Shown here: positions 20,973 through 54,041 of the stretch, piece by piece
How the letters are laid out: each line of letters begins with the position of its first letter
Position numbering within the stretch: the stretch's first letter is position 1
Source of the DNA: Utricularia gibba
Lineage: Eukaryota; Plantae; Magnoliophyta
Length of the DNA stretch: 64,000 nt
Assembly: GCA_002189035.1 (NCBI GenBank)
Contig: NEEC01000008.1
Location: 434,001-498,000 of the forward strand
Direction: 5' to 3'
Program-made: the position numbers and the translations under genes
Notes under the pieces: model-generated
The model's input: the letters and a program-made list of their open reading frames with translations, nothing else
What the model was told of the DNA's origin: nothing
Databases searched by the model: none

Positions 20973-21262
20973 GGTGGGTCGGAAAATCAGAGAATTTCAG
21001 GCGAGAGAAGGAAGAATTGAAGCGTAGGCACAATAGTGAAGTGGGGTAACGGTTAGTAAAAATAGGAATGCCAAAAGAGAAAAAGGGAGATTGAGTGTAG
21101 AAACAGTTAAGGGAATAAGTGGTGGCGTGGGGCAGGTGAAAGTAAAGTCACTTGGAGTAGTGGGTGATAAAAACGAGGAAATAATAACGGTTACGAAATT
21201 AAAGTCATGGGTTGCCTCCCATGCAGCGCCAATTTACAGTCATTGGCCGACTGTGACACCTG

Positions 21263-24200: not shown

Positions 24201-26810
24201 ACTCAGAAAAGCAACGTCAGAAAATTCAGTTTTTCAGGAAAATAATCAAGATAATTTAAAAGTTCGGAATCAGAAAAAGAAATACGATCAGAATCAAAGT
24301 TTTCAGTAAGACATTTGAGCAAGGGATCTTGCTCATGGACCATCGCTAAGTGTTCTACATCTGCGTCAGATGTAGATATTGAGCAAATCTCGTTAATCTG
24401 GTCCGGATATTGCATGGTTTTGTCCAGGCTAAAGTCCAGCACCTGTCCATCAAACTGTAGAGAAATCGTGCCGGCTTGGACATCAATTTTGGTGCCTGCA
24501 GTAGCCATAAACGGTCGTCCCAAATGATGGACTCCGAAATCATGGGATTTTCGCTCTCCATTGGAATAACTAAAAAGTCAGCAGGAAAAATCAAATTTTC
24601 AACATGCACAAACACATCATCAACTCTACCATCAGGCTTCACATGTGATCTATCAGCTAATTGACAAACAACACTAGTAGGCTCAAGTTTACCTAGCTTA
24701 GATGCAAGAGAAAGATAAAGAGATCTAGGCATAACATTAACCGATGCTCCTAAATCACACATGGCAACTGAAATTTTGGTTTCACCAATAGTAACAGGTA
24801 TGGAAAACATACCTAGATCCTTACACTTTCTTGGAAGCCTTCTCTGAATAATTGCTGAAATATTTTCAGTCAAGGGAATTACCTCTTCCACTTTTTCCTT
24901 CTTCTTGGGGTCACATAAATCCTTCAACATTTTCGCATATTTCGGCACTTGATCTATCATGTCCAGCAAGGGAATATTCACATTCACCTTCTTCATCACC
25001 TCCATGAATGCTTTCAGTCCACGTTTGTCCTTATTTTTCCTGCGAAGTCTCATAGGAAAAGGAGGTGGAATGACTAGAGACTTGGGTTGATCAACTTCTT
25101 TCGACTCCTCTTCCTTCACTTCTTTAGGTGGCGTTGGTACAGGAGTGTTCTGGACTGGAGAATCATCAGGATGCTCTAAAATAATCTCCTCATCCACGTC
25201 ATCATCGTCATCCAAGACTTCTAATTCTTTTTCGTCAGATCTGTCCACCTTAGTCATGAACCATGGGTAAGGTTCCGGTAGATCCTTCCCACTTCTTAAG
25301 GATATGGCGTTGATGTGCTCTGGGTTCTTCACTGGTTGGGATGGCAGTGCACCTTGCGTCTCCAGTCAGTTCATGGCTTGAACCAGCTGGGTAATCTGGG
25401 TTTGCATGCTTGTAATTCGTCCTTCCATGTCTTTTTGCGCAGCATGCATTTTGGTGGTGCTTTCGGCAAGGGACTTCACCAAGGACTCCAGATTATGATT
25501 TGGCTGATAAGGAACAAGAGGTTGATCTGGAACTCCAGTGATTTGCAAAGGTTGAGGCGGAGCAGTGAGAGTTTTCTGAGAAACAGCAGATGGGTTCCTA
25601 GTGATGGGGCTTGACCAGGAGGCACTGGTTGTCTCTAGCGGAAACCAGGATGATCTCTTCGCGGCATTTGGTGGTTTCCGTAATTATAACTTCCTCCTTG
25701 GTTCTGGTAGAATGCATTCACCTCTTCTACTTGCATCTCGTGTATCATAGGTCCTGGATCAGAAAGATGAGAGGTTGAAGATCCGTGATACCTTCCTTGT
25801 TGTTGGAGGAGTGATTGGAAGCCAAGCTTCAAGGTATCACTCATAGCAGCAAGTTGAGCTAAAACTTCGGAATTATCCACTTCGTGCACTGATTTTACAG
25901 GCTGGGAATTTCCTCTAGGTGCTCGGTATGAGTAGTCATAACGACTGGAAGTAGAATAAGAGTTGGCAGCCATTTGTTCGATCAATCTGCGGGCATCAGC
26001 GCTGTGGCGGTTCTCTAGTAATGACCCATTACAAGCGGCATCCATTTGTCCTCTGATCATGGGGGTCAGTCCTTCGTAGAAATGTTGTAAAATTTGACCT
26101 TCAGTAAGCCCATGCTGTGGATAAGTGTTACATATCCGGTTGAATCTGTCATAATACTCCTGTAAATTCTCTCCTTCACTTTGTAGCATGGTAGCTAAAG
26201 CTCTTCTTCCCACGGAGGCTCTTCCTAGGGGCGCATATCTATCAAGAAACTTTTGAACCATTTGCTCCCAGGTAGCAATAGAGGATGGTGGTAGTCCATA
26301 CAGCCACTCCAAGGCTCGCTCAGTGAGACTGAAAGGGAAGACCCGCAGTTTGACTTGGTTCTCCGTAGCACCTTTTGGGCGCATGGATGCACAAGCCGTG
26401 TGCAACTCTCTAAGATGACGATTTGGGTCGTCATTTTCTCTCCCAGCGAACTTAGGAAGTGTCTGGAACAAATATGGTCGAAGCTCAAAGTCCTCTTCCG
26501 CGTCAAAGATGATACAAAGTGGTCGGTCAGCATGGCTTGCGGTGATTTCTTCTTTTATGGTCCTTAGTGCTGGGCCATGATTAGTGATCGGTAGAACTGG
26601 AAAAAATTGCGGATGCTGTTGCTCCTGTTCTCCATGCATTGTGGGGACTCCAGTAGGTGGTTGAGCATCCATTTCTTCGTCAGGAGATAGATTTGAAGTT
26701 AGTTCCCTCTTTTTCGCCAGAAATGTGCGCTCAATCTCCGGATCTAAAGGGCACAAGATGTCTCGGTATGATCTTAAGCTTCGATGTCCTTTTGGTGGAG
26801 CTGAATGCAT
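21263..26810 (-). pseudogene. Athila gag-pol (gag, aspartic protease, RT, RNase H, integrase), interrupted
   Basis: PLDPEIERT, KLRVFPFSL (gag); AMCDLGASVNVMP (protease); WRMCVDYRKL, LDGYSGFHQI, EVFMDDFTVYG (RT); LMCDASDVALGAVLGQ (RNase H); HELPCDGH...CPNC, WGIDFMGPFP, HPQTNGMAEISNRE (integrase). Stops at 25635-25637 and 25366-25368, plus several 1-bp homopolymer frameshifts. Confidence 0.95.
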
Positions 26811-28245
26811 AAAAACAAAGAAAAACAGCAGCAAAACGGAAATAAAAGAAAAACAAGAAGAAAGAAAGAAAAGAAAAGAAAAGAAAAAGAAAAACTATAC
26901 ACAACACTAAACACAAAAATACACAACTCCCGGGAACGGCGCCAAAAATTTGTTACGTGTCGTTTCCTCAAGAAATTTTAAATATTTTAAAACGTAAAAC
27001 ACTAGAAAGTGTAGTACGAGTATCGATCTCAGGGAGTTGTTTTTCGTGAAAAGTGTTTGCAAGCAACTTCTACAAAATGTCACGATTTTGTAAAAGGGGG
27101 TTTTTAAGATGCAAAAATGAAAGATACAATCTAAGTAATGGGCCTTGACTACGGGACGCAGTTCCTGGGAATAAGACTCCATCTCCTTCCTTTGTCCGTC
27201 CTTGCCTCAGTTTTCACTGATTTCTTCCGAATAGCTGGTTATAGGAGCAAGGAATAGCCTACTCTTCCTTATACTCTGATTGACAAGGAGGCACGGGAAT
27301 AGCCTCATGTGATTCCCCCTTGGACGATTAGGAAGACAAGAGGATTGCCTTCGATTGCCTTCAAAACCGAATTGTGTGCGTGTGCCCTGCTGTTGCCAAT
27401 GGCCAGTGGCAGGTTCGAGGTCACAACCTGTCCACTGTCGCGGTACCTAGGCCACAAACAATCTACTACTTCTCGAACCAGTAGGGTTGGAGTTGGTGCT
27501 CTTCACCTTGATCTTCACCAAAATCCGCGAGAAGTGGCCTGCTACTCATGGACCTTGACTAAGAGTCGTTACAGAAAGACTGTAACAAGACGCGTGGAAG
27601 TAAGCGGAATCCGAATGGAATTCAGTGAAGAACCGAGTGTATTGCTCAGGACTTGGAAGGAAACTTCATCTACTTCCCAGAAACTAAAGGTTTTAGCCCG
27701 AAAGGGCCATGGAAAACAGAAACGAAAGGAAACTAAGTGTTCTTCCTCCTTGAGGGGAGGAAGAACTCAAAAGTTTTAAGTACAAGGGAAAATGTTCAAA
27801 AGTCCTCAACTAAGTGTTCTAAGTGGCTTTTATATGACTTCCCACGTGCATTAACTCCTTTGGGTCCCCTTCCCATCATTCCTTCTGTCTTGCGTGCGCC
27901 AACAGACTTTCTTTGCGTGCAAGTTTGCGCCCAATAATTGTTGCAGACTCTGACATACCGTAAGTCATGGACCTTGACCAGTGTCAGTCTTCCGCCCACA
28001 ATCATTCCAACTTGCGTACAAGGCACGAAAACTCATAGTTTGATCACCTGCAACACTCCTGACAGTCTCCTGACATGCCTCGGTCAAAGTGTGAGAAAAA
28101 AATGCATAAAATATACACAAAATGGGAAAATAGGAATTTTCTAGTAAAAATCAAATACTTAATAATAAGACTCATAATTGGGCGACTTATCACTTAATTA
28201 ATACATAATAATACCTAAATAATAACTAGAAAATGACACTTAACA

Positions 28246-28830
28246 GACTAGCATGCATAAGTGGCTAATATGCCACACACAAGGGTAGTTTCTAGGGTAT
28301 AAAACACGAGCAAGCACTCGAGCAGAGGGAGGAACGAGGGATGAATGCCTAGGCGACCGTGAATGATTTCCATGCAATGTCTAGGCAGAACGAGTTCAAT
28401 AGAACCAAGGCAAGATGAGAGCAAGCCTAGGGTGTATTCCCTCACCTCTGCATGGGCGGAGCAAGCACATAGTGTTCCATAAGTGGAAGCCAATATAGCG
28501 GCAGTATGTGATCAGGGCAAGGGCAAGCCAAGGGTGTGGCACTGATCTCCCAAGGAATGTAGAAAGATCGTCCTGGGAGAGCCATTGGAATGGATGATGG
28601 GGCTCGGCGTGCACACGAGCAACAACCTAGGGTTGTATGCCTATATGGGGAAGCAACATAGTAAGCCCCTACAATGGGGTAGTGTCTCCATGCATGATGA
28701 GTGACTAGAACACCATGCGTGGGTGTGTGGTAGCATGCGGGCCATGATGTCGGGCGAATGGACCCCCCATCATTAGATGTCTAACATTCCCTCTTGTTTT
28801 TTTTCCCGTTCATATGGTGGTGTGGAGATA
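28246..28830. repeat. Unclassified older repeat into which the Athila element inserted (continues at ~16900-17132)
   Basis: The TSD shows both flanks were contiguous. GC-richer and richer in CATG/TG than the neighbouring AT-rich DNA, similar in texture to the Tekay LTRs. No family motif recognised. Confidence 0.35.
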
Positions 28831-29831
28831 GTCTTACGAGCTAGGCATGAGGATCGAAACCGAGATTTATGAAAACGAACCGTAACCGAAACCGCAGTAA
28901 CTAGTCGTAGGTGCTTTCTAAGCACTCATATGAATCCTTATGGGTGTGTGGAAGTGAAATTTTTAATAAATATTAAATATTTAAAGAATTGATTTTTATT
29001 TTAAATAAAATTAATATATATATATGAAAAATTATTTTTTTCAACTATATTTCTAATAAATTATTTTTAGTTTAAATCTTTAATATTTTTGAGAAAATAT
29101 TTTTTTATTATTAAAAAGTGAATACATTTAAAGAATTTAGTCTTACAGTTTTACATAAAAATGAAACATAACAATGTTATATTAACATTATCTGTAAAAT
29201 AAGTAATTTGGTGAGATTTTAATATAATAATAAGAAATAAATAAATTTGATATAAGTTCAATATATAATAAATAATTTGGTATATGTTCAATGTATAATA
29301 TAATAAAAAATACATTAATTTCACTAAAATTAATAAATATTGTTATCGTCCATTTTGTAATTCGTATGATTGTTTTTTATGTTCAATTTTATAATTAATA
29401 GAAAAAACATGATTCCGTTGTTAAAAATTTGAAGCGATGCCTACGCATTAGAGGATTTCGTAGGATGTATAAAAAATGATACGAAATAATTTTCTAGTAA
29501 CGGTACCTACTAAATAAGTACTTTGGTAGGAGCTAGCCATAATAATACGAAATAATTCAATTTTACTGGAAAAAAAAAATATTGTTATCTCTTTTGTAAT
29601 TTGTATGTTTGCTTTTATGTTTAATTTTATAATTTTCGTAAAAAATGTCAATTAGTTATTAGAAAATTAAGCGATATTTGCAAAATAATTAGATTGTCAC
29701 GATTGAAATATAATACTACAAAATAAGTCAAATCTTTTGAAAAAAAAACACAACATTGTTAATGACTCTTTTCATTTTCTTCCCTTTCCTTTGGGTCTGC
29801 CTCTACCTTTTCCTTTATCTTTGCTTGTGCC

Positions 29832-32800
29832 TGTTGTTGCAAGAAAAATAGAGTCTTGGGAAGTAACAAAAAGGTAATGCTTATGAGATCACTTTGGATG
29901 AAAAACGACTCATGAACAATAAGAATGACCAAAAACCTAATTGACACACATTACTAGTAGGGTTTATATATACCCAATACCTAGGTTACCCAACAGTGGG
30001 CCACAATCATTGAAAACACACAAAAAGCCCAACAACTCGAATCCAACACTTCCATGCTAGAACTCAACACCTTTTTATCTGAAATATAACATTATGACAC
30101 AAGATTAGTGCTTTCAATCACCTTCAAGCTTTGGATTGAGGCTGATCTCCAACACTCCCCCCCAGACCGAGATCTCCCAACTTGAGAAAGTCTTCCATAG
30201 TCATGAGATTCATGTTCTTCCTTGCTAGCTCAAACTGAACTCTGTTCAAACCTTTGGTGAGCCCATCAGCAAACTGATTCCCACTCTCAACATACTGCAC
30301 TTTAATCTTCTTCTCCTTGATGTAATTCCTTATGACATGATACCTGATTCTTATGTGTTTGGCTTTGCTGAAGTTCGCCGGATCCTTGATAATGGAGATT
30401 GCAGCTTGATTATCCATAAGCAGATGTGCAGCTTCTTTTTGTATGAATCCAAGTTCGTTTAGCATCTGCCTCAACCAAACACAATAGTTCGAAGCATGTG
30501 CTGCTGAGATGTATTCTGCTTCAGCTGTTGATTGTGCTACCATTTTTGTTTCTTCGAAAACCAGACTATAGGGGTCTTATTTAAGAAGAAGAGTGCACCA
30601 GATGTACTCTTGCTATCTTCAGCCATACCATAATCACTATTTGAGTAGGCTCTAAGTTTCAAGATTGGTTTTTCACCTTCATAGGGATAGAACAATCCGA
30701 AATCAGTAGTAGATTTTATGTACCTGAAAGCTCTTTTCACAGCTGCCATGTGAGTTGTTGTTGGTTTGTTGAGGAAGCGAGATAAGACATTTACACAAAA
30801 ACACAAGTCAGGCCTTGTATGCTGGAGATAAATGAGGCTTCCAATCATACTTCTATAAGTAGTGGCATCCACATTCTTTCCCTGATTATTCTCTCCAATC
30901 ACCTGTTTGTAATCCAAAGGCGTTTTTGAAGGATTGACATCTTTGAACCCAAACCTTTCAAGAAGTTAAGAAGTTCATTACAGTACTTTTTCTGTGATAT
31001 GAATGTTCCAACACCTTCAAGTTGATGAATTTCCATGCCTAGATAGTAGGACATCATTCCAAGGTCAGTCATCTTGAATTCATTTTTGAGTAGAGCTTTG
31101 AATTCCTCAATCTTTCTTTCATTACCTGAGGTAATCATAAGATCATCCACATATAAGCTAATAAATAAACGATCATCTTCTTTTCCTTTAACATATAGTG
31201 AGTAATCACTATATGTTTTTCTGAAACCAATACCCTGGAGAAAGTTATCCATGCGTTCATTCCATGCTCTAGGAGCTTGCTTCAACCCATAGAGAGATTT
31301 CTTTAGCTTCAATACCTTGTCTTCATGACCTGACACTTCGAAGCCCTTTGGTTGTTCAACAAAAACAACCTCCTCCAACACACCATTCAAGAACGCAATC
31401 TTGACATCCATGTGATGCACTTTCCATCCATGAGCAGCTGAAATGGCAAGAAGTACTTTAATCGTGTCAAATCTTGCTACTGGTGCAAAAATCTCATGAA
31501 AATTTATTCCTTTGATCTGACTGTATCCCTTGGCTACTAATCTAGCCTTATATTTGTTGATAGAGCCATCTGCATTCATCTTGGTTTTGAATAACCACTT
31601 AAGGCCAATAGGTTTGAAACCCCTATCCTTGGGTTTATCAACTAACTCCCATGTTTCATTTTCAAGTATAAAATTCATCTCTTCCTTCATGGCCTCTCTC
31701 CATTTCGGATTTTGTACAGCCACTTCAAATGATGTTGGATCTCCTGTCAATAATCCAGCCAAAATATCAACTACAGCATCTTGGACATCATCATTCAACT
31801 TGGAGAAACTTATTGTTGGAGCCTTATTTCTATTGCTTCTTCTAATGTCAGTAACATGACTATCTTCATTATCTATTGAATCTCTGATGTTTTTGCGTTT
31901 CCTCCTTTGCCAATCATGATCAGATGGGTAATAATCTTCATCATCAGTATCAGGTTCCTCTCCATCAGATTCATCTGTTGATGAGTCTTCTGCATTCGTG
32001 CCTTGCTCCTCTTCTGGGATTTCGAAATTCCCATCTGAATGTTGATCATTGGCCTGATGAGATTGTCCATATAAGGGTTCAGAGTTTGATTCTGAATTCT
32101 CATTGGACAAGCCATCTTGATTTGTGACCATCTCCTCCTCTTGAGCTGGAAAATTCTCATCTGAATGCTGATCATTTACTTGATTTGAATTTTCATGAAC
32201 GAGTTCTGAAGTTTCTTGGTTTGTTGAATTCTTGGAAGAGAAGTTTTGAGGCATGTGTGTCCAGAGGTCTCCTTTAACATGGGTGCTATGCCTTCCAAGA
32301 CTTTTATGAGCTTCTCATCATTCAGAGCAATGCAATCATCAATTAAAGTATACCTTGCACCTTCATCAAAAGTGATATCATGGCTGAAGATAAATTTCTT
32401 CTGTTGAGGTAGATAAACATTATATCCCTTGGTAGTGTTGCTATAACCAACAAATACACCAGATACAGATTTCTTTTCAAGTTTTCCTCGTTTTTGGTCT
32501 AGTATATGAGTAAAACACAGACTACCAAAGATTTTGAGATGATCAACCTTTTTAATATTACCATGCCATTTTTCATGGGCGGTTTTTCCACTAATCGCCC
32601 TTGAGTCAAGCAAGTTCAATAGATATACAGATGTAGATACCGCTTCAGCCCAGAAATTTACAGGAAGATCTTTCTCAAACAATAGGCATCTTGACATATC
32701 AAGGATTGTTCTGTTTCTCCTTTCACATATACCATTCTGTTGTGGAGAATATGGTACGGTGAATTGATACATGATTCCCTCATTTTCATAGAACATTCTC

Positions 32801-35215
32801 ATGCTATTATTGTAGAATTCGCCTCCATTGTCTGATCTAATCATCTTCAAAGAGCATCCACTCTGATTCTCAATCATCACTTTGAATTTTCGAAAGATAT
32901 GAGGAACTTCTGACTTGCTTTTAAGAAAGTAAACCCAACAATAACGTGAATAATCATCAATGAATGTAACAAAATATTTACTCCCCCTAATGAACATTCC
33001 TTAAATGTTCCACAAACATCTGTATGCACAAGCTCTAATTTCTCCTTTGCTACTGAATCACTGGAATAAAAGGGCTTTCTACACTGTTTACCTTGATGGC
33101 ACACTTCACATATGGCATTAGCAAACTTGATGTCTTTCAATTCCTGTACTTCCTTATTCTTCTGCAATATTTTCAGATTGTTGAAGCTATAGTGCCCAAA
33201 ACGTTTGTGCCAAAGGCTTCTTTGATCCTGAAGTGAGAAAATACAACTTTTATGATCACTGACCATGATTTGGTAGAGGTTGTAGGTGGTCAACACAGCA
33301 TGGAATCAATCTTCGTTTTTGGATCAGCAACCTTAACTTTAGTGGTTATACCACCAGCGTCCTTCATCAGCTCAATGTCAAAACCTTCCCTGCTCAATTG
33401 GCCAAAGCTCAACAGGTTCTTTTTGAGGTTTGGTGAATAATAAGCATTATCAACTTGAACAATTCCTTCTTTTAGCAAGAGTAAAATGCTTCCTTTTCCC
33501 ACAATGCCAATATTTTCACCAGTGCACGTGCTTACCTCCTTCCCAATCTTTTCAAGCTTGAGAAATGACCTTGTATCACAACATACATGATAGGAGGCGC
33601 CAGAGTCCAAGTACCAGCCTTTAGCATCTGAGGCTACTATCATTAGAGCACACTCATACTCAAAAGGATCTTCAAAAGATATTTCTGGCTCATCTTCAAA
33701 GTAGGTAAAGGATGCATGTGATTTCTCTTCCCTGGAAGTAGCCTTCTTGTTATGCTCAACTTTTATTGGATTTGACATTCCACATACCTTGTCAAGATGG
33801 CCTCTTAGATTGCATTTCGTGCACAAAAGATCAGGTTTCCACCAACAAAACTCACTCCTGTGATTCTGTTTGTTACAATGCTTGCAAGCATTTGTGCTTA
33901 AAGTCCAACAATCTTCACTCTTATGGTTGGATTTGTCACAATGCCTGCACTTCTGATTGCCCATCGTTGATGTCGGGATTGACGTTGGTAATTGTTTGAT
34001 GGCTGTTGACTTGACATCCTTCACATTGTTAATTGCACCTGAGTTCATATTCATATTCTGCATTTTGGTGAGGAGAGCAGTTTCACCATAAGTTTTCTCA
34101 ACTTCATAACCATCTCTTAGCTCCAATCTCTTTTCTGTAGATTGCAACTCAATCATGAACTCTCTAAATGTTGGCTCTGGTGTAATAGGATATTCAGGAT
34201 ACAGCTGATGGAGCTTTCCTTCAATAATGTCAAGGATTTTTCTTTCTGTCTCAAGTGCACATAACTTTGGCTCGAATCTTGCAGGTAGGCTCATGATTGC
34301 CTTGCTAATCACCTTTTGATCCTCAAGTTTTTCCCCCAATCCTCGAATCTCCTTCACAAGCTTCGCAGTATGTTCATAATAGACTTTTATGGTTTCATTG
34401 TCTGACATTTTGTTCCTCTCAAAGTCCTCCAGCTTGTTTTTGCATAATATCTCTCTGAGTTTGGCATCGCCTTCATAATGGGATTTGAGAGTATCCCATA
34501 TTTCTTTTGCTGATAGACACTATGCAATATCATCAAATAGATGTTCAAAGATGGCTTGATACAAGGCATCCATTGCTTCATCTTTTCTCTGTTGAAGATA
34601 TTCAGCTTCCTCTTGCTGTTCTGATGTGGATTTGCTTGTTATTGTAATCACCGGAATCTCCCTTTCGACAACATCCCAAATCTTTCTGACCCGCAGGTAG
34701 CTGCGCATCTTTTTGACCCAGCTTCCATACTCTGAACCATCAAATATTGAAGGTCCTCTACCAGATGCCATCATAGCCACCGCTTGACAAGCTTTGGGTT
34801 GATACTTGGTAATCCACCAAGTAAAAAACGCTGAACGGTAAATAAAATACTGAAACGAACACAGGTTTGAGAACCTTACTGCTCTGATACCATGTTGTTG
34901 CAAGAAAAATAGAATCTTGGGAAGTAACAAAAAGGTAATGCTTATGAGATCACTTTGGATGAAAAACGACTCATGAACAATAAGAATGACCAAAAACCTA
35001 ATTGACACGCATTACTAGTAGGGTTTATATATACCCAATACCTAGGTTACCCAACAGTGGGCCACAATCATTGAAAACACACAAAAAGCCCAACAACTCG
35101 AATCCAACACTTCCATGCTAGAACTCAACACCTTTTTATCTGAAATATAATATTATGACACAAGATTAGTGCTTTCAATCACCTTCAAGCTTTGGATTGA
35201 GGCTGATCTCCAACA
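29832..35215 (-). mobile_element. Young full-length Ty1/copia LTR retrotransposon
   Basis: 323-bp LTRs at 29832-30154 and 34893-35215 with 3 differences. TSD GTGCC. PBS TGGTATCAGAGC (tRNA-iMet type, plus 34881-34892). PPT at 30155-30165. Confidence 0.98.
30124..34774 (-). pseudogene. Copia gag-pol polyprotein (gag, 3 zinc knuckles, protease, integrase, RT, RNase H)
   Basis: FDGSEYGSWVKKM (gag); WYLDSGASYH (protease); LWHKRFGH...CEVC, FIDDYSRYCWVYFLK, PQQNGICERRNRT (integrase); KARLVAKGYSQ, LYGLKQAPRAW, LYVDDL (RT); STAEAEY, KHIRIRYH (RNase H). One stop at 34520-34522 and five 1-bp frameshifts in homopolymer runs. Confidence 0.95.
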
Positions 35216-37565
35216 GTGCCCGCACTTGTAGAAGGTATGTCTCTTTGTTGAGCCATTGCTATAACATCGTTTTCATTCAATTGAGATTGCAATCTGTGAA
35301 GTTGTAATTCTTCCTCTAACACCTGTATTTTTTCATTCAGCTTCATTATTTCCAATTGAAAGTTGATAGATTTTTTTTGTCCAGCAATCAATTCATCGCC
35401 TTTCATCTTCAATTCAACCTTGTATACAGATTGTTGTGCTACCAAATCATCCATTCTGTTTTTGTTTTTCTAAATCTGAAACTTCAGATCTGTTATCTAA
35501 AGAAGAAAAAAAAACTAAATTAGAAAACATAAAAAAACAACTATCACATGTATTAGCAAAATAAGTTTCATTTTTATTACCCCATTTTCCATCCGTTGAA
35601 TGTGTTTATATTGGTTTAAAATGAGTTCTTTGTCATGTTTGGTGCAACCAAGAGCTTCTCATTAATATACACTTCAGCCTCCTCATGAATAGGCACTTCA
35701 TTCTCCCATCTCCATTTTCCTTTTCAGAATTCTCCTACATAAAATTTTTTTTATATTGCAAACCTTATTTATTTGAAGAGAAAATTAAAAATTTAAATAA
35801 TATTCCTACTTTATTTACATGTTGTTCATTGCTATATAAACAACAAGCAGATGACGATTTCGCCTTGATGTTTGTGCAGACCACCACTCAACGACACCAT
35901 GAATGTTTCGAAGTGCTGTCATAGTGTTAAATAAATAAGTAAAATAACATATTGGAAAAATAATGTACATTAACAAGACTTGCATCGAATTTGAGCAGAC
36001 TTCGAGATGATGTCTTCAGTCATATATCTTTTTGATTGCAAAAGACTTTTTAATGCATGTCTAGTTTCCTCATTCACATTGATTTTTTCAATACGAGAAT
36101 TTATAACATCATCCCCAGGATATGTCAATGGATAATGCCTTGAGATTTCAAAAGATATAGGTGGTACAATCCATAAAAGAAGTTTATCCCATCGTACCAC
36201 AGTTCTAGGTAGGTTTTGATAAAACCTAGTATTTGGTAATCCTTGAAAATACTATATTCCAGTAGGAGCTTTTTTTGGAAGAGATAGTGCAAAAAAATTT
36301 GACAAGTAGGTTCTACATATTCTTCTTCACACAAGTGTAAGAAGGCTAAGATAATATTATAGGAATATGGTGCTAAAAACCCAATAGGCAATCTCAAGTA
36401 GGTGAGCACATCAAGAGCAAAGGGATGAATAGGTAGTCTAAGACCAGCATCAAATGTTTTACGAGACACAAGCCAAGCATTGGAATGTTCATGAGGGGGA
36501 TTGGTGTCAAGAGGTGTGTTTTGCGGAGCAGGAATTGTCAACCAATCGGTTGGGATGAAATATTTAACACGAAATCTATCCATTCCCTAATCAATAAAGG
36601 ATACATAATAAGAATAAAATTCTAAAAATAAGGAAATGGAAAATAGCAAAACAAACATGATATTAACGATGAAAAACGCATCTAAACCCAACTAAATACA
36701 TAATTATATGAAAAGACAATTTTTAATAACTAAACCCAACTTAATATATAACGCATACTGCAGCAACAAATGCATAGAATACATTTCACAAAAATAATGT
36801 AAGTTGCAACAAAAAGATTACCCGATTTTAAGCCAACGAATTCTGGGTTTTCAGGAGCACGACAACACTGATAAGAAGAGCCTTTGTATGCAGCAAAAGG
36901 TGATGTAAACGAGGTAGGGTTCTACACTTAGATAGTGGACGCCAACTTTTTCAGAAAAGCATATTGCATAAAATAATTCACATCCATATATAGTCTAAAT
37001 CAATTGTTTAAAATAATTAAAAAAAATTGCGCCACCTACAAAATACTCATTGTTTGATGTGCCGTCCCAAATTTCAAATTTTCAGTATTTTAAAAATGAT
37101 AAACGAAAAAGGTTATGGATATATTTCATCGAAACCTACGCATTACGTGTGTTTGTATGTACCTTCTCAAAATCCAACTATTCTTACATTTTTTTAAAAA
37201 ATGAGGAGAATTTATTATACATTTAATTGTCCTAAACCCTTAATTAAACTACACATTTAAAATTTTAGTAGTTTTTGTTCATAGTAATGAAATTTATCAT
37301 CACCAATATTGTAACGTTAAAAATAATAAAAACCACATTTCTTTGCAAATATATGTTCAATATTTTTTTATAAAGCATCATAATATTTGACATTTAAATT
37401 AGAGAACAAGATATATTAGTGTCTAATGTAAATGTGGATGATTATTTATAAACTTTAATGTCATTATATTCCATTGAATTATACAATTGTAATTTTAGAT
37501 TTTTGATATATAACCAATTTAATAACCAAGTGTATGCAAGAGTATACTAGCAAAAAATGACTTAC

Positions 37566-39181
37566 CGGATTTTTCATTGATTTGTGAGGTGAATCATCAA
37601 TTAATAAGGTATTGTGACGGTCATATCTTGTGTTCAATCCATTGTTGACAGCCCATACACGATTCAACTCCTTCATGCAAACCGTGTTGCTAGGATTGTT
37701 GTGAACACGTACGCCGGTGTCCGTCGTCATGGTTTGGTCCCACATGAAAATGAGTTTGTCGAATAAGGAAGGTGGAAAGACTCATTTAGTGATTGCTTGT
37801 AGTTGCTCCCTACAAAATAAATCACTTGCAAGTGTTTGCACCAATTATAAATACCAACAAAAAAAAAAAGATGCAGCACACATACCCCCACGGGCATGTG
37901 GATGTAGAAAAACTACATAATTTGCACTAAAAATTACCTATGATATCTCAAAAATCATTAATGCACATAACACACAAATATAGGTATTGTTTTAACGTAC
38001 CTGATCGGCCATATATGATTTTATCTGGAGGGATTCGTGACCTTGATGCTCCAACCCTATAAACGATGTTTGTTAGCACACCATTTATATCCAAGATAAT
38101 CAGCTTTCGTTGAGGCTCAGAGGCACTAAAAGGAGGTCCGGTATATGCCCAACGACTCTCATACCAATCCAACTTGTTGCGAAGCTCTTCATTCTCCTTT
38201 GTTATAAATTCAAGTCTGTCATCGACATCATCGAGACCATGTGTGATCTCGTCCCCTTCAACATCATTCCCATCTTGTGTCCTCTCATTCCTAGACAAAT
38301 CTTCATTCTTTTGGGAGACTCTATGATTTTTCAACACACCACACCAATAGCGTTTTGTCCCCAGTGCATCCACAAATGGTGGTAAAATGTCAACAAAACT
38401 CATTTGCATACTTGAGAAGAGGAAAATAAGATCTTGTATATCCCTCTTGGATAAGGTATCAAATCCTACAATAAAAGTAAATTTATTAACAATATATTCA
38501 ACAAAAATATTGAATAAGAATATTCAACATGATAAGTGTAAAAATATTCGAAAAGGGTATTGAATAAAAATATTCAATCACAATAGTTTAAATAAGAGTA
38601 GATTAAAAAAAACACTCAATCATAATACTTTTAATAAAAACATTCAATACAAACATTCATATTTCTTCTAATAATACAAAGCAAGATTTACCTTTCGCCT
38701 TGCCTACTTCGCTCGAATTAGTATAAATTTGAGGAAATTTGGTTTCCTTTGGAGGACATATCCAAACAAAACTTGTCCACCATTATTCAAATCCTCTTCT
38801 CACATCCTTTACTAGCACCAACCCTTTTTTCCCCTTTAGGGTGTAGTGGTTCTTGTTTAGAGTCCTAGAGCATATACTCATAGCAAAAAAATAGCGAAGT
38901 TCCACCTCAAGATATAACTCCTCACAAATACTAACAAAGGCCAACACATATGAGATAGATCTTGGAGTCAAATGAATCTCTAAACATTCTAATATTTCTT
39001 CTAAAAAGGGCAATAATGGTAACCGCAAACTACAACGAAAATGTTCCGTGCTTAAGGCAAATCCCACTGGACCCACACGGTTTGGAATTTCATTCTCAAT
39101 CAACTCATCCGGTTCTTTGTCCCAAATCTCATCTTCATCCGGTATCAAGAATCTAGTTCTCAATTTTTCAGAAGTGTGCAT
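37566..39181 (-). pseudogene. Reconstructed multi-exon gene: TRP28-like domain fused to an FCP1/NIF-type HAD phosphatase domain
   Basis: Exons 39181-38692, 38465-38001 and 37912-37566, all GT-AG with consistent phase. TRP28 motifs RTRFLIP, SLRLPLLPFL, LTPRSI, WWTSFVWICPP. HAD motifs RKLIILDINGVL, KLIFMWDQ, KELNRVW, YDRHNTLLIDDSPHKSMKNP followed by a GTAAG donor. One stop at 38783-38785 and two in the last exon. The expected final exon was not found. Confidence 0.75.
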
Positions 39182-39859
39182 CTACAAAGATCCATAGGAA
39201 TTGTATAAAAATTCAAACTACAATAATTCGACAAGGTACTACAAATTGGAACATAGATCAGCAACCCATGGTGGAAAATAAATAACTTACCTTGTTTAAT
39301 TTACAGAACACTCCAAGTAGGTGATGGGACTGTGGGGGCGTCCAGTCGCTTTCGACTGGGGGAGGGGGAAAGAGGTAAGAAAATTTTTTTACCAGATGGG
39401 TGGGGATTAACGTGGGGAGTGGGTAAAGTGGGGAGTGGGGTGGTGATGTGCAGCGCTGTGTATGAGTGCGTGGGGATTTGGTTTAATACACCAAATCATA
39501 AGCTAATGATTACGCGCAATGATATCCCTACTTTCGTAGGTTGTCGGTAATAGCTTCCGTTGTTTTTAGACAAGGTGTGTGCCGCTTGTTTGAATCGATG
39601 CGAACCCATCGTGTAATTAATACTCCAATTTTGAGGCACCCAGAATCACTAATGTGGGCGACTGGCACAAGAAATGCAAAATTAGGCACCTGTACCCGAA
39701 ATTTGGGGATTGCGCTATCTTTGAAAGTATTCTTAATTTTCATAAATATAAAAATTTGTTGGTGCATTAATTGGAATATAAAAATCTGAAAATAAAATGA
39801 TTTTATATATCCTAATTATTACAAATTAATTTCAATAAATAAAGAATATTCGTCTATTG

Positions 39860-40260
39860 CTTAGACCATTTTCCAGACACCCACATTGCCTCGTGTGGAT
39901 GTCTGGAAAGAGAGTCGAATATCCTTTCAAGGCACCTACAAGGCCTTGTGTGGGTGTCTAGAAAGAGTGGGTAAGGCCATTTCTAGGTACCTACAACTGT
40001 TATATGGGTGCCTGGAAAGGAGTATTTGAGACAGTTTTCCAAACACCCTCTTCCCTCATGTTGGTGCCTCGGGAGGGTGTACAGGAAAGAGAGTTGGACG
40101 GCACCTACAAAATAATGTATTGTGTGGGTGTCTGGGAAGAGTGATTTCCAGGCACCCATGTCTGTTATATGGGTGCTTGGGAAGGATTATTTGAGACAGT
40201 TTTTCAGACACCCTCTTCCCTCATGTAGGTGCCTCGGGAGGATGTTTGCGAGTCTGCGAC
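39860..40260. repeat. Array of palindromic TTCCAG(G/A)CACCCA ... TGGGTG(C/T)CTGGAA modules
   Basis: At least six alternating forward and reverse copies, plus a larger internal duplication (about 39995-40075 vs 40165-40245). Related modules at 28916-28954 and 43601-43730. Confidence 0.8.
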
Positions 40261-40351
40261 CGAATTCTAGCACCCACTTTTAATTAAAAACATGAATACA
40301 ACATTTTCTTACAAAGTAATATTATTTCATGGAGCACTAAATGTTTCCAAA

Positions 40352-42427
40352 TTAGGAGTCTTCAACTTCATCTTCACTTGAACTTGAGGATAAGGTTTGA
40401 TTTCTTTTCACAGCCTCCAGCCAATCCTTTAGACAAATGCATGCCTCTACGTTCAATTTGGAGCGCTTGTGATTAAGAACTCGTCCCCCTGTACTAAACG
40501 CACTTTCGGATGCCACTATAGATGCTGAAGGTGTTAGAAGATCTTTGACCATTCTAACCAAGATAGGGTAAGTAGTAGAATTTGTCTTCCACCAACCCAA
40601 TATATCAAAGTTGTCATCATCAACACTCTCAACAATAGGAGTATTATTGTAAAGTGTTTGAAGATGATGAAGAGGAGGACACAAATGAACTATGCTTCCT
40701 ACGAATAATGTCCATTGGATTGCGACTAACAAATGTCGAATTGTTACATGCTTTAGGAATAGGAACACTAGGATCCCTATATTTAGACGCATAAAGGGAA
40801 TACATGGCACGTAGAACATTATTGGCAACAACATCTATTTCTTCACAATTTTTAATGGAAAAAGCAACATCATCCACACTAAATGATTCTGAAATACATT
40901 CAAGTAATGTTTTCAGACTTAACCCGGGGATCCAAAATAGGTGCAACAAGAAACAAATGTGGGACTTCATCAAAATATTTCAAAAAATTATTTTTCATCT
41001 TTCGCACTACATCTCCCAAAAAATCACAATCACTTTGATGGTCATAAAAAGCAAACAAAATTTTACAAATACATGAAAGCACAAGTTGAGAAGTTGGGTA
41101 GTAAATACCACTCAAAATCTTAGTACAAGAATAAAGTATTTCTAATAAATTTACTAAACCTCTTATTTTTTCAAAAATAGAATGAGTCAAGAAATTGTAG
41201 CCCGTGACTGATTCACAAAATTCAATAAGAACATGTTGATAAGGAATCAAAAGTTGTAACATATCATATGTAGAATTCCATCAAGTTGGACAATCACTTT
41301 TAAATTTACGATAAGAGATGTTCATTTCTTGACAAATCCTTTTAAAATCATCTCTTCCATTAGGGATAGTTCTAATCATACTAATTAAATTACGAATAGG
41401 AGTTAAAAAATTTCACATTCTTTCAAACCATTTTGAACACACAAATTTAATATATGACAAGTGCACCTAGTGTGGAAAAAAATGCTATTTAACATATGAT
41501 TCATGCTATTTTTCAAAATGTCTATAGCATTTGTATTTGCAGAGTCATTATCCAAAGAAATAGAAAAAATCCTATCAGATATTCCATAAAATGCTATGAC
41601 CTTTTCAATGATTTTAGCAATAGAAAAACCATTATGTGGTGATGGCCATTCTTGAAAAACTAAAATTCGTTTTTGCATACACCAAGAATTATCTACCCAT
41701 GAACATGTAATAACAATATAACTCTCATTGTTACAACCTTTCCAACCATCACAAGTCAAACAAAAATTACAATGTAGAGATTTAAAAGTAGAAATTAAAG
41801 AGTCACGTATATTTTTAAAATCCTCAAGTGCCATATGATGTGCGGTTTTCCTAGAAAAATTTTTGTATCCCAGTTGAACTTGTTTCAACATATCATTAAA
41901 AGAAGGTTTTTCAACTAATGAAAAAGGAAGTTCATTAAGTATCGAATAACGCACCACATTTACTTGAAAAAGTTTATAATTAAAAACAAAATTAGATAAT
42001 CCCACACTATTGTCACCCCCTAAACATAATCTCGTTTGACGAAACTGAGGTAATTTATCATTATGCTTCTCCCTAACATGCCTCTTATATGTACCGGTTC
42101 CCAACCCTTTTTGAAAGTGTACTCTTTACCACAATGTTTGCAAGAAATTTTTTCGGGATTACAAAAAACAAAATGTTCTCGAATATCTAGAGAATCATTA
42201 CTAGTGTTTTTCGATCTTTAACGACAAAGGAGACTCGATGAGGTAGAAGAACCCACTTCTTGAGGACTAGAAAAATCATCTTGTTCGGGTAAAGGACCAC
42301 ATGCAAGCTCTTGTAAAAATTGAAGGTCTTCCCCAAAAGAAAATTCTCTATCATTTTAAAAAACGCAAGGTATAGTAGAATCAGCTTGAGAAGCTTGAGA
42401 AGAATTTTGCAAACCAGACCCCTCCAT
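40352..42427 (-). pseudogene. hAT-superfamily transposase (BED finger, DDE core, dimerization domain), decayed
   Basis: SCKHCGK...GTGTYKRHVREKH (zf-BED); CLTCDGW, SLDNDSAN, TRCTCHILNL, APILDPRVK; WWKTNSTTYPILVRMVKDLLTPSASIVASESAFSTGGRVL (Dimer_Tnp_hAT). Several stops and frameshifts. Confidence 0.93.
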
Positions 42428-43175
42428 TCTGTAAAAAATAAAAAAACCTATTACCCTATAGGCTTCACCAATGTCGTCCAAGTGGAATTCTGAAACTTGA
42501 CACTTGAGAGTACCTCCAATCACGTAGAAGTTGAAATAGAATTATTTCTAGTAATGAGTGATGAGACAATAAGAGAAAGTAGTGGAAAACTATAAGATAA
42601 CCATATCATATATATAGACAAATTTTATTAATAAATTAATAGCAACGATTACTTTCAAAACCATGTGCAACTCCACAGTCTGCACAGTCACAAATGCATG
42701 TACTAGCCGTTGAAATAAAAATATACATAACAAATATATTTTAAATAAAAATTTCAGATATGATGCTGCCACACGAGTCTTCACATGAACATTTTAAATA
42801 TATACTTATTTTAAATATACATTGCGTTACCAATATGGATACATTAGTTTGGCAATGCATAACTAGTTATTGAGAAAAAATATATAGATAGTGAAATGTT
42901 AAAATATTTTGTGAATTATTGTTATTCTGTTTTAGCATATAAATCTATTAAGTTATAGTTCAATAAACAAGTGAACTTAATATATGTCTACATAAAAATT
43001 AATAATTTATTTTTATGTGAATAATATAAAACATATATTTCATTCTCGAATAATCACATAAATTGGAATTTTTTAAATATTAATTTTTGTTTTACTAATC
43101 TGTTTTACAACAAAAAACAACGTTCAACATAAACTTTGATTTATGTATTTAAATTTATGTATTGAATTATTTTAT

Positions 43176-43470
43176 ATTAACGCTACCTACGAAAGTAGTA
43201 ATTTGGTAGGAGTCGAATACACAAATATGTTGGACTCCTACCACATGACTTATTTCGTAGGTGCCATTAATGTGGGACATACACAGGCGTGGTTTATGCA
43301 TAACCTATGTCCGTGTGTTGGATTTCTACCAAATTACTTATTTCATACGTAGCGTTAATACAAGATACACATGGGCATCGTTTATGTATAATCCGCGTTC
43401 GTGTATTGGACTCTTATCAAATTACTTATTTCATAGGTAGCGTTAATGTGGGTACACATGGGCGTGGTTC
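43176..43470. repeat. 88-bp tandem repeat (about 2.7 copies) preceded by an inverted partial copy
   Basis: Units start TTGGA at 43230, 43318 and 43406. 43176-43222 is the reverse complement of the unit core. A further copy of the core lies at 29501-29533. Confidence 0.85.
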
Positions 43471-43849
43471 AAAGAAGACAATGAATACTCCATCTCAAAA
43501 GCCATGGATGTATATTGCCATTTGTGAACAAAAGAAATCAACAAGATGAAAAATAAGTGTATGTAATTTAAAAGAGTGTGTCGTGAGGGTATTGAGACCA
43601 TTTTCTAGGCACTCACATTTGTCGTGAGTGTGTTTGGGAAGGGGTGTTTATTAAGGGCAAAAATCGATTTAGACCCCATCAGTGCTTGATAAGATTTTTC
43701 AGGCACCCACTTCCTTTGTATGTGTGCCTAAAAAAATTTAAAAAAATAATATACATTTTTTTATTTTAATTTTAAATTTTAAAATTTTAAAATTTTTAAA
43801 ATTGTTTTTAATTTATTTTTAATTGTTTTAATTTTTTTTTTAAATCCAA

Positions 43850-44023
43850 ACCGCACGGTTTACGGTTCGGAACCGTGAACATTACGGTTCACACACGGGT
43901 TGGAACCGTCGGTTCCACGGTTCCAATTATGCCGAACCGAACCGAAACCGTACGGACATCCATCCGTTGAAACCGACTGTTTCGGTTCGAACCACGGTTC
44001 CGGTTCAATCGAACCCACCTCTA
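43850..44023. repeat. hAT-type subterminal AACCG/CGGTT repeats and terminal inverted repeat
   Basis: Dense AACCG/CGGTT pentamers ending ...GAACCCACCTCTA (TAGAGGTG on the minus strand), resembling Ac-like hAT ends. Confidence 0.8.
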
Positions 44024-45045
44024 GACTGATCCCTTACATTCTATGTAGGTGGTGAGTCAGGTAGTAGCACGGGCAAGGATGCGATATGATTGGGCGAGGA
44101 ACACTATAGCGCTAGTAGTATGTAGTGTAACTATGGCGTGCATGTGTTGTGGGCTGATGTACCACCATTTTGTGACAGTTCTCATGATGGTATTAGTATC
44201 TTATCGCTATATTTCATCATTTTCTCACCACATTTCCGCCACCCCATCACCATCTCCTCGCCATGGGGCACATGGAACCCTAAAGGGGTCCTGGTGTCAT
44301 TCGAAAGCATCCTCCCTATTATATATGTTGAATATACTAAATTATAGATAACGACACTAGACATAAAAATATTGAAAAAAACTACATTTTTTTGCTAAAG
44401 ACAGAAGATGTCCTATGATGGGGTCCGGCACCTCCAACAGCACCTCCCCCCTATGATTGTAGAACATTTCAAAACTTGTGTAATGGTAGTAGACATCAAT
44501 CTATCAAAAAAAAGTAATGTTTTTTAGGAAGTCTTGGGTAAGTTCCTTACATGTCACGTCCTTGTCGTGTCCGAGCACCTCCACGAGCCATGCCTCCGCC
44601 AAAGAGTCTTGTCCTACAGCCCCCTTCCCTGTGACGATTCGTAGCGACACCCTGATCGGGCAAACCATCACCACATGCATGCTGGTAGCATGATCGCAGC
44701 ATCACTCTCTGCACCCAAGGCATCCCATACAATGCATCCTATGCACATGCCTAGTGTAGCCTCGCCCACATGTGGTGTTCGTTCCTGCCAAGTGTGTCCA
44801 TGACCGGGGTTTTGGGCATAGAGGTTAGCATGGCACAAAAACCAGCCTTTGTTCATACTTAGCAAAATGTCAAGTTCAAATAAGAAGAAAAAAAGGGAAA
44901 ATAAGCAAATCTTGTAAGGTTCATGTGAAGCGCCCCAAGAACTACCCTGACCACCATCACTCAGCCGTCCCATCCTCAATATAAGCCACACTTATCCTAT
45001 CCATGCTCTCATTCCCGAATGCCCCTACAAGATATGTAAGGGGTT

Positions 45046-45984
45046 CAGCTGCATGCGAAAGTTGGAAAGGCGGTGAAACACGAAAAAGGCATTACAATTC
45101 AGCTGCGTGCAAAACTTAACACTTTTTCTTTTCTTTTGAGGTGAAGGGCGAACAGAAGATTCTGGAACCGGATCAGAGGGAAATGGATTTATCGAATCGG
45201 AAGTGGGAGGTGTACTAGAAATAATAGGGATATCAGGTGGAGACTGAAAGAGATGATGAAATTCTAACTCAGAACCAGAGGGGATGATGAAATCGCACCA
45301 TGCCCCCCCCCCCCCCGAATATGACCAAGGATCCCGCAAGTGGTCAATGTATCTCACGATAACATTTGGAACCGGGACTCGTATTTCACAGAGCATTCGT
45401 TGAGCCTCCGATACACATCTCTTCGAGAATCATTAGAAGGGCGAAAGCAGCCGACCTCAAAGGGACTGGGAGGCTTAATCGGGAAGTTCCATCTAGCTCC
45501 TATGAGGGGAGCAACCCAAATAAAGGAAGACCACCAATCATGATGGGTATCGGGAGGTTTAACGATGAAATCGGGATGATCTTCGAACCGGCGAAATTGA
45601 AAGTGAGCACGCCCATGCATCAGCGGCTTAGCTTTTCAAACTGCAACTTTGAAGAGTTGAAAAAAAATCCACCAAGGTCATTGCCGGATCCATACCCGCC
45701 GAGTAGAACAAGAAGGCAGTAAAGCAAAAGATTGAATTCGGGGCTAGGCAATAGAGGGGGATTATGAACATATGAAGAAATTGAACGAGTAGAGGATGGA
45801 GCGGAAATCGGAGGCCGCTTTCTAAATAGGCAATGGGGATGGGGAGATTAAAACAGGGAAGAGGCATTTCCCCAGATCCCCAAGGAATCTGACCATCCCT
45901 AGCCTGAGAAATGATATATTCTTCCGGAATCAAATATTTGGAGCGGATTGCAGGGATGCTCAGTGTGCTAGATCTTCTGCCCAT
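45046..45984 (-). pseudogene. Antisense Transposase_28 (TRP28)-like ORF of the Tat/Retand fragment, frameshifted and truncated
   Basis: RSKYLIP, ESGLRFPLHPLL, LAPNSI, PDTHHDWWSSFIWVAP; intronless; antisense to the LTR, as described for Retand elements. Confidence 0.8.
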
Positions 45985-47007
45985 TTCGTTTTCGAGAACT
46001 GAAAGGTGGAGGAAGTTGCAAAGGGGACAAACAAAGAGTAGAAACCCGTGGAGGGATTAGGATGAGAAGAAGAGGATTTCAAAAATCTAGCGGAACGTAG
46101 AACTAACCCAGGAATGCGAGAAAGATGCAGAGAAAATACGGATACTTGAAGGACTTGCAGTTTCCGATGAGTAACATGGCGGCAAACACGACGGAGCACG
46201 AATGGCGCTGAAACTTCCCAGAAGAACAAAGAAAGCAAAGGGGAGAAGTGACGGAAAAAAGGCGTATTTATAAGGGAGGTATTCGGATGGTGAAACGGCA
46301 CATCGTTTGGAGTGCCCAGAATGAGTGGGAAGAAGCGTGGCGTGCCCAGGAAGTGACGCGTGGCGAAGAAATCGTTTTGAATCAGTTTGAGACTCACCCC
46401 TGGAAGAATGATACGCTCGAAATCGGAATAGCTGGGATTCTAATTCCCCGACTTGCCCTGAAAGGGTCCATATTGGCAAATCAGAGGGGCTGAATGATGG
46501 AGTACAAATCAAATATGGTTAGATGGTCGTTGAAAAGCTGCCAAAAAATGCTCTGACAGGATCGCGCCGGCCAACAAACCGATATGTATCAGAGACACAG
46601 TCTGAAAAGTGGTTGAATTACGGCAATGCGGACGGCGATCTTCTGAAAAGAAGGATCATGATACAGGCGCAAAAAGCAACCGATAATCCTAAAATTCAGG
46701 GGCCGGTCAGTTCGACCTTTTCTATAAGTAAGAAAAATCTTGAAGAGAAAGGGGTTCGACCCTAAACCTCCCAACATGTACCTTTCTTTACCATCCCCAT
46801 CTAGTAAAGGCTTTCTCCAGCGAGCTTCGATAGCTCCGTGGTTTTTCCGTCCTCCGGCGTTTTCCACGTAAAAATCTCCGCCCACCCTTATTTTTTGTTG
46901 ATCAAATCGAACAAATTGCAAAAAAGCATAACAAGGTGCGATATCTCCGGCCGCACCTATAACCCGAAAATCGGCCCCATCATGGACACCGATTTTTACC
47001 CATAACA
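45046..47007 (+). mobile_element. 3' fragment of a Tat/Retand-type element (antisense TRP28 ORF, PPT, 3' LTR) inside the Tekay LTR
   Basis: LTR 46495-47007 (TGATGG...CATAACA) preceded by purine-rich AGAGGGGCTGAA; homologous to the solo LTR at 11798-12313. Host LTR similarity stops at 45045 and resumes at 47008. Confidence 0.8.
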
Positions 47008-53000: not shown

Positions 53001-54041
53001 TCCTCGCCTTTCCCTAGTTGTCCCCTTTGTTGCCACCTTTGTGAAGTGGGAGTGGAGAGGAAGAAGTGGCTTCGACTCTTCTCTTTAAATAGGGTTCATC
53101 CTCCCCTTGATTCCCATTATAGATATTTCCATATCTTCAAGATTTGAACTCTCCTTAGATTAGGAAAATTCACTTTAACCATATCTTTTCATATTTCACC
53201 ACCTTCGCATGCCATGCATGTCGTCACCGTGTCTCGCACATGTCCCATTCGTGTGTGATGTGCGCTTGTGTACACACATGCTGTGCGCGTGCTATCCCTA
53301 TCTCATGCGTGTGCGTGTGCGCCCCTGCTAGCCTCTATGCATGTGAATGCTCCCTTGTTTGCCCGCTAGCCTCTGCACACGTGGTACCTCCTCTATTCGC
53401 CCACTAGGCTCTATGCGCACATGCTTCCATGTTCATCTGCTATCCTTTGAGTGTTGCGCATGCTGTTTGCACGCTCTCTCACCATCTTTACTCGCCATCA
53501 TGCTCGTATGATATCTCGCCCGTGTGCTATCCGCATGCGCCCTGCACTAGCCTCTGCCACCCTTGGTACTCACACGACATTCGCATACACCCCGTGCTAG
53601 CCTCTACCACCATGCTACTCATGTGCTCCCCACACACACCCATGCTAGCCCTTGCTGTGTACATGCCCTCCGTGCATTCCATGTGCTAACCTCTCTTGCC
53701 AACACTACTCGTGCAATCTACCTCATTTCCATACATCTCCTAGCACCCCTTGATCAGACCCTCATATTCCATCCCAAACACATATAAACCAAGTAAGATT
53801 TAGGAAAAACATTGGTACTTTATGTCGGGTTCGTCACACTTCCCTCACTAATCCCCTTGAACACCCAAACCATTACACAATGGAATCATCATTTAGAAGA
53901 CAAGGGGGCACTGTGCTGTGCTCAATGTATTATGAATAATAGGGCCCAGTATAATATAAGGGCTAATGGGGCCCAAGTTGCAAGGACCAAGGCTGTTTTA
54001 CGGGATGCCCGCCCAAGAGGACGATTGCTTTGCCTGAGCAT

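Follow-up and report, generated by a model that had tools for sequence, protein, structure and literature searches.

In a window of 64,000 nucleotides from the genome of Utricularia gibba (assembly GCA_002189035.1, contig NEEC01000008.1, positions 434,001 to 498,000 of the forward strand; coordinates below are those of this window), a unit with mirrored arms at 28842-44023 contains a gene for a hAT-type transposase and two further genes (gene 1 and gene 2), each encoding a protein with a TRP28 domain. The three genes are located on the minus strand between the arms, in the order transposase, gene 2, gene 1, and gene 1 is interrupted by a nested Ty1/copia retrotransposon. Without the copia element and one copy of its target-site duplication (TSD), the net length of the unit is 9,793 bp. 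A first-pass annotation of the sequence had put the unit without the copia at about 9.8 kb, with the transposase and both TRP28 genes on the minus strand; both statements were borne out, the latter by Pfam matches to PF05699, PF14372 and, twice, PF04195. The unit is AT-rich (23-40% GC, versus 43-47% in the GC-richer flanks), and the GC content falls sharply just inside its left end. No match to Rfam was obtained over 28000-45000.

The transposase gene (40352-42523, minus strand) is a pseudogene in this copy and was read across three frames. It retains the hAT C-terminal dimerization domain (PF05699, E = 2.5e-21; 40352-40834) and the hAT-type RNase-H-like (DDE) core (PF14372, E = 5.5e-9; 40900-41262), and the WNSTY and LDPR motifs are legible in the broken gene. 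A BED-like finger (CKHCGKEY...GTGTYKRHVREKH) has no Pfam match and is legible only across a frameshift near 42100. The gene has also lost 1 bp at 41404 and carries a TGA codon at 41283-41281 within TRWNSTY, and its frame changes twice more between 40640 and 40900.

Gene 2 (37479-39181, minus strand) comprises a TRP28 exon (39181-38692), a GT-AG intron (38691-38467) and exons encoding a NIF/FCP1-like HAD domain (38466 to about 37480). The TRP28 domain matches PF04195 with E = 6.2e-6 and 26.8 bits (gathering cut-off, 26.2), and PF04195 proteins in BLASTP at 5e-10. The splice, as read from the sequence, is in frame, with a GTAAAT donor near 38692 and a TTGTAG acceptor near 38467. The match of the later exon to PF03031 (E = 0.049; 13.7 bits, cut-off 21.8) falls below the profile threshold; the look-alikes found with a language model are NIF clusters (0.92), and sequence searches of the PDB with the NIF-like pieces were blank. 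The catalytic motif DxDx(T/V) reads D-I-N-G-V in gene 2, with Asn in place of the second Asp; the HAD part is therefore NIF-like and probably does not work as a standard catalyst. This copy carries a TAA codon at 38785-38783 and further stops in 37800-37900. The intron contains AATATTCAA-type units repeated in tandem about every 50 bp (38491-38673), an array that varies in length among other copies (joint 38511-38604), and a G-rich tract (GGGGGAGGGGG..., GTGGGGAGTGGGG) located upstream of gene 2 at 39330-39460 is absent from some family copies (joint 39320>39458, in two sequencing runs).

The main part of gene 1 (35221-36583, minus strand; three-frame reading) consists of a TRP28 exon (36583 to about 36280), a middle exon that contains WDKLLLWIVPP, and an exon encoding the coiled coil (35454-35221). 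The TRP28 match is stronger here (PF04195, E = 9e-12, 45.5 bits against the same cut-off; BLASTP against TRP28 proteins to 1e-15), and the architecture matches ordinary TRP28 proteins, which are about 500 amino acids long. The tail of the gene, namely the last 19 codons and the stop with an AT-hook (GRGRPKGKGRK), has been severed by the copia element and is located at 29772-29831 on the minus strand; once the copia and one TSD copy are removed, the frame continues from 35221 into ...TSAGTSKDKGKGRGRPKGKGRK and the stop codon. In addition to this interruption, gene 1 changes frame by 1 bp near 36300 and contains a TAG codon at 36254-36252. The copia element itself (29832-35215, minus strand) has 329-bp long terminal repeats (LTRs) that are 98.5% identical and have TG..CA ends, a perfect 5-bp TSD (GTGCC at 29827-29831 and 35216-35220), RVT_2 (2.5e-82) and rve domains, and a weak copia-type gag match below the cut-off. 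It is a later insertion and does not belong to the hAT family. The TRP28 domains of genes 1 and 2 are only 29-30% identical to each other, which indicates old paralogs and not a recent duplication.

The two arms are organized in the same order from the outside inwards, with a terminus, an array of AACCG motifs, a family of palindromic motifs (hp1) and a second family (hp2). The left terminus, TAGGCATGAGG..., and its short subterminal array occupy 28842-28896, as judged from four AACCG motifs at 28858-28890, the fall in GC content and a weak match of the terminal inverted repeat (TIR). The right array of AACCG/CGGTT and the terminus (...CCCACCTCTA; reverse complement, TAGAGGTGGG...) are located at 43846-44023, with 15 motifs at 43849-44001. 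These are the only two clusters among the 69 occurrences of AACCG/CGGTT in the window, no other 200-bp bin containing more than three, in agreement with the first-pass annotation, which had placed AACCG repeats at both ends. Its statement that the unit has no internal TIR also held, in that a search allowing up to 3 mismatches found neither of the terminal 15-16-mers again within the unit. The presence of only two AACCG arrays and the lack of internal termini argue against a hAT element nested within another hAT element. The right end, TAGAG, conforms to the hAT TIR consensus 5'-YARNG, and the left end, TAGGC, conforms to it incompletely. Just outside the ends, the sequences at 28824-28841 and 44024-44036 resemble each other loosely in inverted orientation (GGAGAT-AGTC and GGGATCAGTC; shuffling p = 0.28), the left one being separated from TAGG by 8 additional bases, TTACGAGC. 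Alternative termini at this inverted similarity, GAT(C)AGTC, were rejected because it is not significant and no offset yields a TSD. No empty site was found, as the flanks have no paralog spanning the insertion point.

The hp1 family is composed of palindromic units of about 40 bp with the pattern TTTCYAGRCACCCAC...GTGGGTGYCTRGAAA, for which 6 matches were found against 0.35 expected; 9 of the 12 half-sites in the window fall within the unit. The right arm contains hp1 copies at 43595-43740 (nhmmer E = 1e-6 and 1e-5). A further array with a period of about 165 bp is located inside the unit, between the 3' end of the transposase gene and gene 2 (39863-40245, identified with nhmmer; hairpin z = -5.6, -5.4 and -3.0), whereas the left arm has a single degenerate copy (28915-28954; nhmmer E = 0.29, with a weak hairpin, z = -1.8). 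The hp2 family forms an array in the left arm (ATTAACGYTACCTAC...TTTGGTAGGAG; 29175-29718, nhmmer E = 2e-14 to 2e-8) and one in the right arm made of 88-bp units in inverted pairs (43169-43452, nhmmer; hairpin z = -7.7), and its nhmmer profile matches at these two places only. Within the window, hp1 and hp2 are both restricted to the unit. Two motif families shared by both arms had been noticed at the outset. The pair 29501-29533 and 43181-43213 stands, since it belongs to hp2, the left and right copies of which are 83% identical over 48 bp (BLAST, E = 2.5e-7) and are confirmed by nhmmer; the pair 28916-28954 and 43601-43641 is hp1, which is weak in the left arm, and whose strong internal array had been overlooked.

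Whether the genes between the arms belong together was examined with contigs from four low-coverage public DNA runs of the same organism, from four studies, that could be placed on 36100-42099 with at least 85% likeness. In each run, all 30 bins of 200 bp were covered (367-3235 contigs; 85-100% identity, many at 95-100%), and such coverage from small runs indicates a high-copy repeat. Just 3-8% of the placed contigs continue into unlike sequence; the loose ends listed concentrate within the internal hp1 array, the copy number of which differs among family copies (contig joint 39927-40278), and form no cluster at the boundary between gene 2 and the transposase gene. Moreover, two contig joints fuse gene 2 to the interior of the transposase gene (39000>41683, and 39028>41175 with 34 other letters between), as would Ds-type internal-deletion derivatives of a single composite element. 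Most of the differences are C>T or G>A changes, the pattern of methylated repeats.

At several lesions of the copy in the window, contigs of other copies have a different sequence. In gene 1, their contigs have a 1-bp insertion near 36303-36305, and almost all have TGG in place of the TAG codon (36253 T>C); in gene 2, the TAA codon is GAA in almost all contigs (38785 A>C). In the transposase gene, one more A follows 41404 in about half of the contigs, at the point where the frame of this copy changes. The premature stops that were checked in the two cargo genes are thus specific to this copy, and at the checked sites the ancestor of the family copies had open cargo frames. Taken together, the full coverage of the bins, the rarity of unlike continuations, the joints between gene 2 and the transposase gene, and the sense codons at the stops indicate that cargo and transposase form one amplified family; they are co-amplified and, at short range, collinear.

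On these grounds, 28842-44023 is probably a decayed copy of an abundant and large (about 9.8 kb) family of the hAT superfamily, the full-length form of which carried three co-oriented genes. Its gene set would be a transposase with a BED finger, an RNase-H-like core and the hATC domain, a spliced TRP28::NIF(FCP1)-like gene, and a spliced gene for a protein with TRP28, a coiled coil and an AT-hook. The copy in the window is dead, because none of the three genes is intact, gene 1 has received a younger copia insertion, and no TSD remains. We infer that the entire 9.8-kb unit could be mobile. What is new here is a multi-gene hAT element, in which a transposase and both TRP28 genes are located between one pair of arms, and which is classed as hAT even though the TSD criterion fails in this copy. 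The first-pass annotation had proposed a hAT family with accessory genes of its own. This proposal is supported in part: the unit is of the hAT superfamily, and its cargo is located between the arms without a second set of ends and is repeated and collinear with the transposase gene over short distances; a full copy bearing both ends, all three genes and a TSD was not seen.

Several observations weigh against this assignment. No 8-bp TSD is recognizable, the flanks TTACGAGC and GACTGATC agreeing at 3 of 8 positions and at 6 of 8 at the best offset within +/-8; the 25-bp TIR alignment between the left and right ends is marginal against shuffled sequences (p about 0.05), and the AACCG array on the left is far shorter than its counterpart on the right. 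The contigs are 130-430 bp in length and were placed on 36100-42099 alone, so that the linkage seen is short-range, and the attachment of gene 1 and of the left arm to the rest is presumptive. Open frames in the consensus would equally appear for a recently captured passenger. Furthermore, no other full copy with both ends was recovered from protein or metagenome collections, and BLAST found no further copy of the unit elsewhere in the window; the copies with both ends, all three genes and 8-bp TSDs that had been suggested as a check thus did not appear in any of these searches, and the copy described here itself lacks the TSD. Neither the TRP28 open reading frame (ORF) nor a 233-aa transposase ORF gave a hit in a word-based protein search, and metagenome scans for the hATC ORF and for the 22-mer of the right terminus were blank. 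An exhaustive phmmer search among 1.8 billion representatives returned remote TRP28 proteins only, with identities of at most 40%, and the genomic contexts examined of two such relatives contain no hAT element. The lack of a TSD, together with the weak TIR and the small number of AACCG motifs on the left, could reflect truncation at the left end or ectopic recombination between two members of the family.

An alternative is that the unit as a whole is a composite, either of a TRP28-carrying element nested in a small hAT element or of parts of related hATs, a fragment with the left end and an element with the right end, joined by ectopic recombination or rearrangement. The lack of a TSD, the weak TIR and the unequal AACCG arrays (45 bp versus 175 bp) speak for this, and the hp1 array at 39863-40245 looks like an inner arm, as though a transposase-only ancestor had ended nearby. 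However, 29719-39863 is not bounded by second termini, long inverted or direct repeats, or LTRs. Between the left hp2 array, which extends to 29718, and the stop codon of gene 1 at 29772 there are only 54 bp, which leaves no space for the end of another element. The occurrence of the cargo segment elsewhere with ends of its own is what the first-pass annotation had named as evidence to the contrary; within the unit, no such ends were found. The contigs of other copies cross 39100-40350 without breaking at a common position, and in some of them gene 2 is fused to the transposase gene; in addition, three motif families occur in mirrored order in both arms. A composite origin is therefore improbable.

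A somewhat more credible alternative, albeit still an unlikely one, is that the cargo genes are passive passengers: a hAT element would have picked up TRP28 genes, from Retand or another transposon, and a NIF-like host gene, and amplified them without benefit by transduplication of the Pack type. The NIF-like part does resemble a host gene family, TRP28 is otherwise a gene of Retand (PMC11963269), and the open frames of the consensus may merely mirror those of a master copy. Pack-type cargo consists of host-gene fragments without a maintained frame, whereas the cargo here reads as whole spliced genes with their own starts, in the orientation of the transposase gene, and the premature stops examined are specific to this copy. 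The junction between TRP28 and NIF is an in-frame GT-AG intron. The TRP28 domains, at 29-30% mutual identity and at most 40% identity to any of the representatives searched, have diverged to an extent that implies long separate histories as open frames. The position of hp1 arrays upstream of the transposase gene and of gene 2 also speaks against passengers.

The transposase and the ends resemble those of hAT elements of the Ac/Tam3/Tag1/Dart type, which share the hATC dimerization and RNase-H-like domains, probably a BED-like finger, short ends beginning with TAG and subterminal motif arrays. By contrast, such elements are 3-5 kb in length, and the present unit, at about 9.8 kb, has two additional spliced genes on the downstream side of its transposase gene, extra palindrome arrays and, in this copy, no TSD. 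The subterminal motifs are AAACGG in Ac and AAACC in Tag1, compared with AACCG here, and the right end, TAGAGGTGG, presumably resembles the TIR of rice Dart. Since the transposases of Ac and Tag1 recognize their subterminal repeats, the AACCG arrays are, by analogy, more likely to be candidate binding sites of the transposase than of an accessory protein, and the element would have moved by a cut-and-paste mechanism through this recognition.

The presence of accessory genes beside a transposase gene is, on the other hand, a property of VANDAL Mutator-like elements with the anti-silencing proteins VANC, MuDR (mudrA/B), CACTA (TNPA/TNPD) and PIF/Harbinger (two ORFs). VANDAL21 has private arrays of short motifs in its non-coding parts, as does the hAT unit. 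VANDAL elements belong to a different superfamily, however, and the cargo has no homology to VANC. The cargo proteins may be analogous to VANC, with the arrays as their putative binding sites. The two TRP28 proteins would be helpers encoded by the element that act on its transcription or chromatin. Such a role is suggested by the AT-hook, the NIF domain of the type found in phosphatases of the polymerase C-terminal domain (CTD), and the private palindrome arrays that precede genes; hp1 arrays stand upstream of both the transposase gene and gene 2, and the AT-hook of gene 1 coexists with very AT-rich arms. Any function of the cargo, be it in anti-silencing or in regulation, is at present a conjecture from these features. 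A combination of a plant domain associated with transposable elements and a phosphatase-like domain also occurs in the PMD proteins MAIN and MAIL1, which act with the phosphatase PP7L, and in PMD-PP7 fusions, which have a role in the silencing of transposable elements. These are host genes with PMD and PPP domains, whereas the present genes are transposon cargo with TRP28 and HAD/NIF domains.

In limited literature searches, no published hAT element with accessory genes or TRP28 was found, and a study of Retand was the sole relevant work; the view expressed at the outset that no hAT family with this cargo has been described agrees with these searches. Retand is a Ty3/gypsy element of the Tat lineage, in which TRP28 is encoded in antisense ORFs; the study, which leaves the origin and function of the gene open, reports no known similarity to other transposable elements, and DNA binding is predicted (PMC11963269). 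The Retand proteins are like that of gene 1, in that TRP28 (PF04195) is N-terminal and followed by a coiled coil (PMC11963269). The arrangements are otherwise different. In Retand, TRP28 is antisense and located between pol and the 3' LTR, whereas in the hAT unit it is encoded in the same direction as the transposase, in genes with introns, one of which is fused to NIF; and Retand has LTRs, gag and pol, whereas the hAT unit has none of its own. Retand itself was considered as the carrier of TRP28 at this locus and was rejected, because the only LTR pairs in the window belong to the copia at 29832-35215 and to an Athila-like gypsy element at 17133-28245, and the cargo is flanked by hAT arms.

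A bolder idea is that TRP28 is a mobile helper module common to DNA transposons (hAT) and Retand, which binds element-specific palindrome arrays and, with a NIF/CTD-phosphatase-like partner, counters silencing or steers transcription; the antisense TRP28 of Retand would then go back to the nesting of such a DNA transposon. We regard this as a long shot. The domain itself was modeled with AlphaFold for the closest TRP28 relative, from a 44-sequence alignment that included the three TRP28 domains of the window. The N-terminal model is confident over residues 10-160 (pLDDT >88), and no structural relative was found in the PDB (Foldseek E > 1; best VIA Z, 2.6); in the ESM Atlas, it matches plant TRP28-type clusters only, including an At3g60930-like cluster. 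Thus, the TRP28 N-terminal domain has a confidently predicted fold with no relative among solved structures.

The third TRP28 ORF of the window is located outside the unit (45628-45984, minus strand; PF04195, 5.7e-5), within a GC-richer repeat on the right-hand side (44629-47906). A copy of this repeat that is 78-91% identical occurs 7.6 kb onward (52207-53836) and lacks 45046-47010, where TRP28 ORFs are located. On the left, the Athila-like Ty3/gypsy element (17133-28245, minus strand) ends 600 bp from the hAT unit; it has LTRs about 1,300 bp long with 97.2% identity, and contains gag, RT-RNaseH and integrase, with ORFs that match ATHILA ORF-1 and Transposase_32 downstream of the integrase. 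Further to the left, a series of long ORFs (194-552 aa) on the minus strand, which have only weak matches to Pfam families of coiled-coil type, extends over 266-5232 and may represent the coiled-coil part of another accessory gene of a transposable element.

The hAT elements are the textbook example of single-gene DNA transposons. If the reading of 28842-44023 as a multi-gene family is true, the maintenance of a two-gene cargo would place hAT beside MuDR/VANDAL, CACTA and PIF among the superfamilies with multi-gene members. TRP28 would gain a second, independent genomic setting, and a DNA transposon as its carrier would provide a hypothesis for its origin as well as a simpler system for functional tests. 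Unrelated classes of transposons may thus share a single helper module, TRP28.

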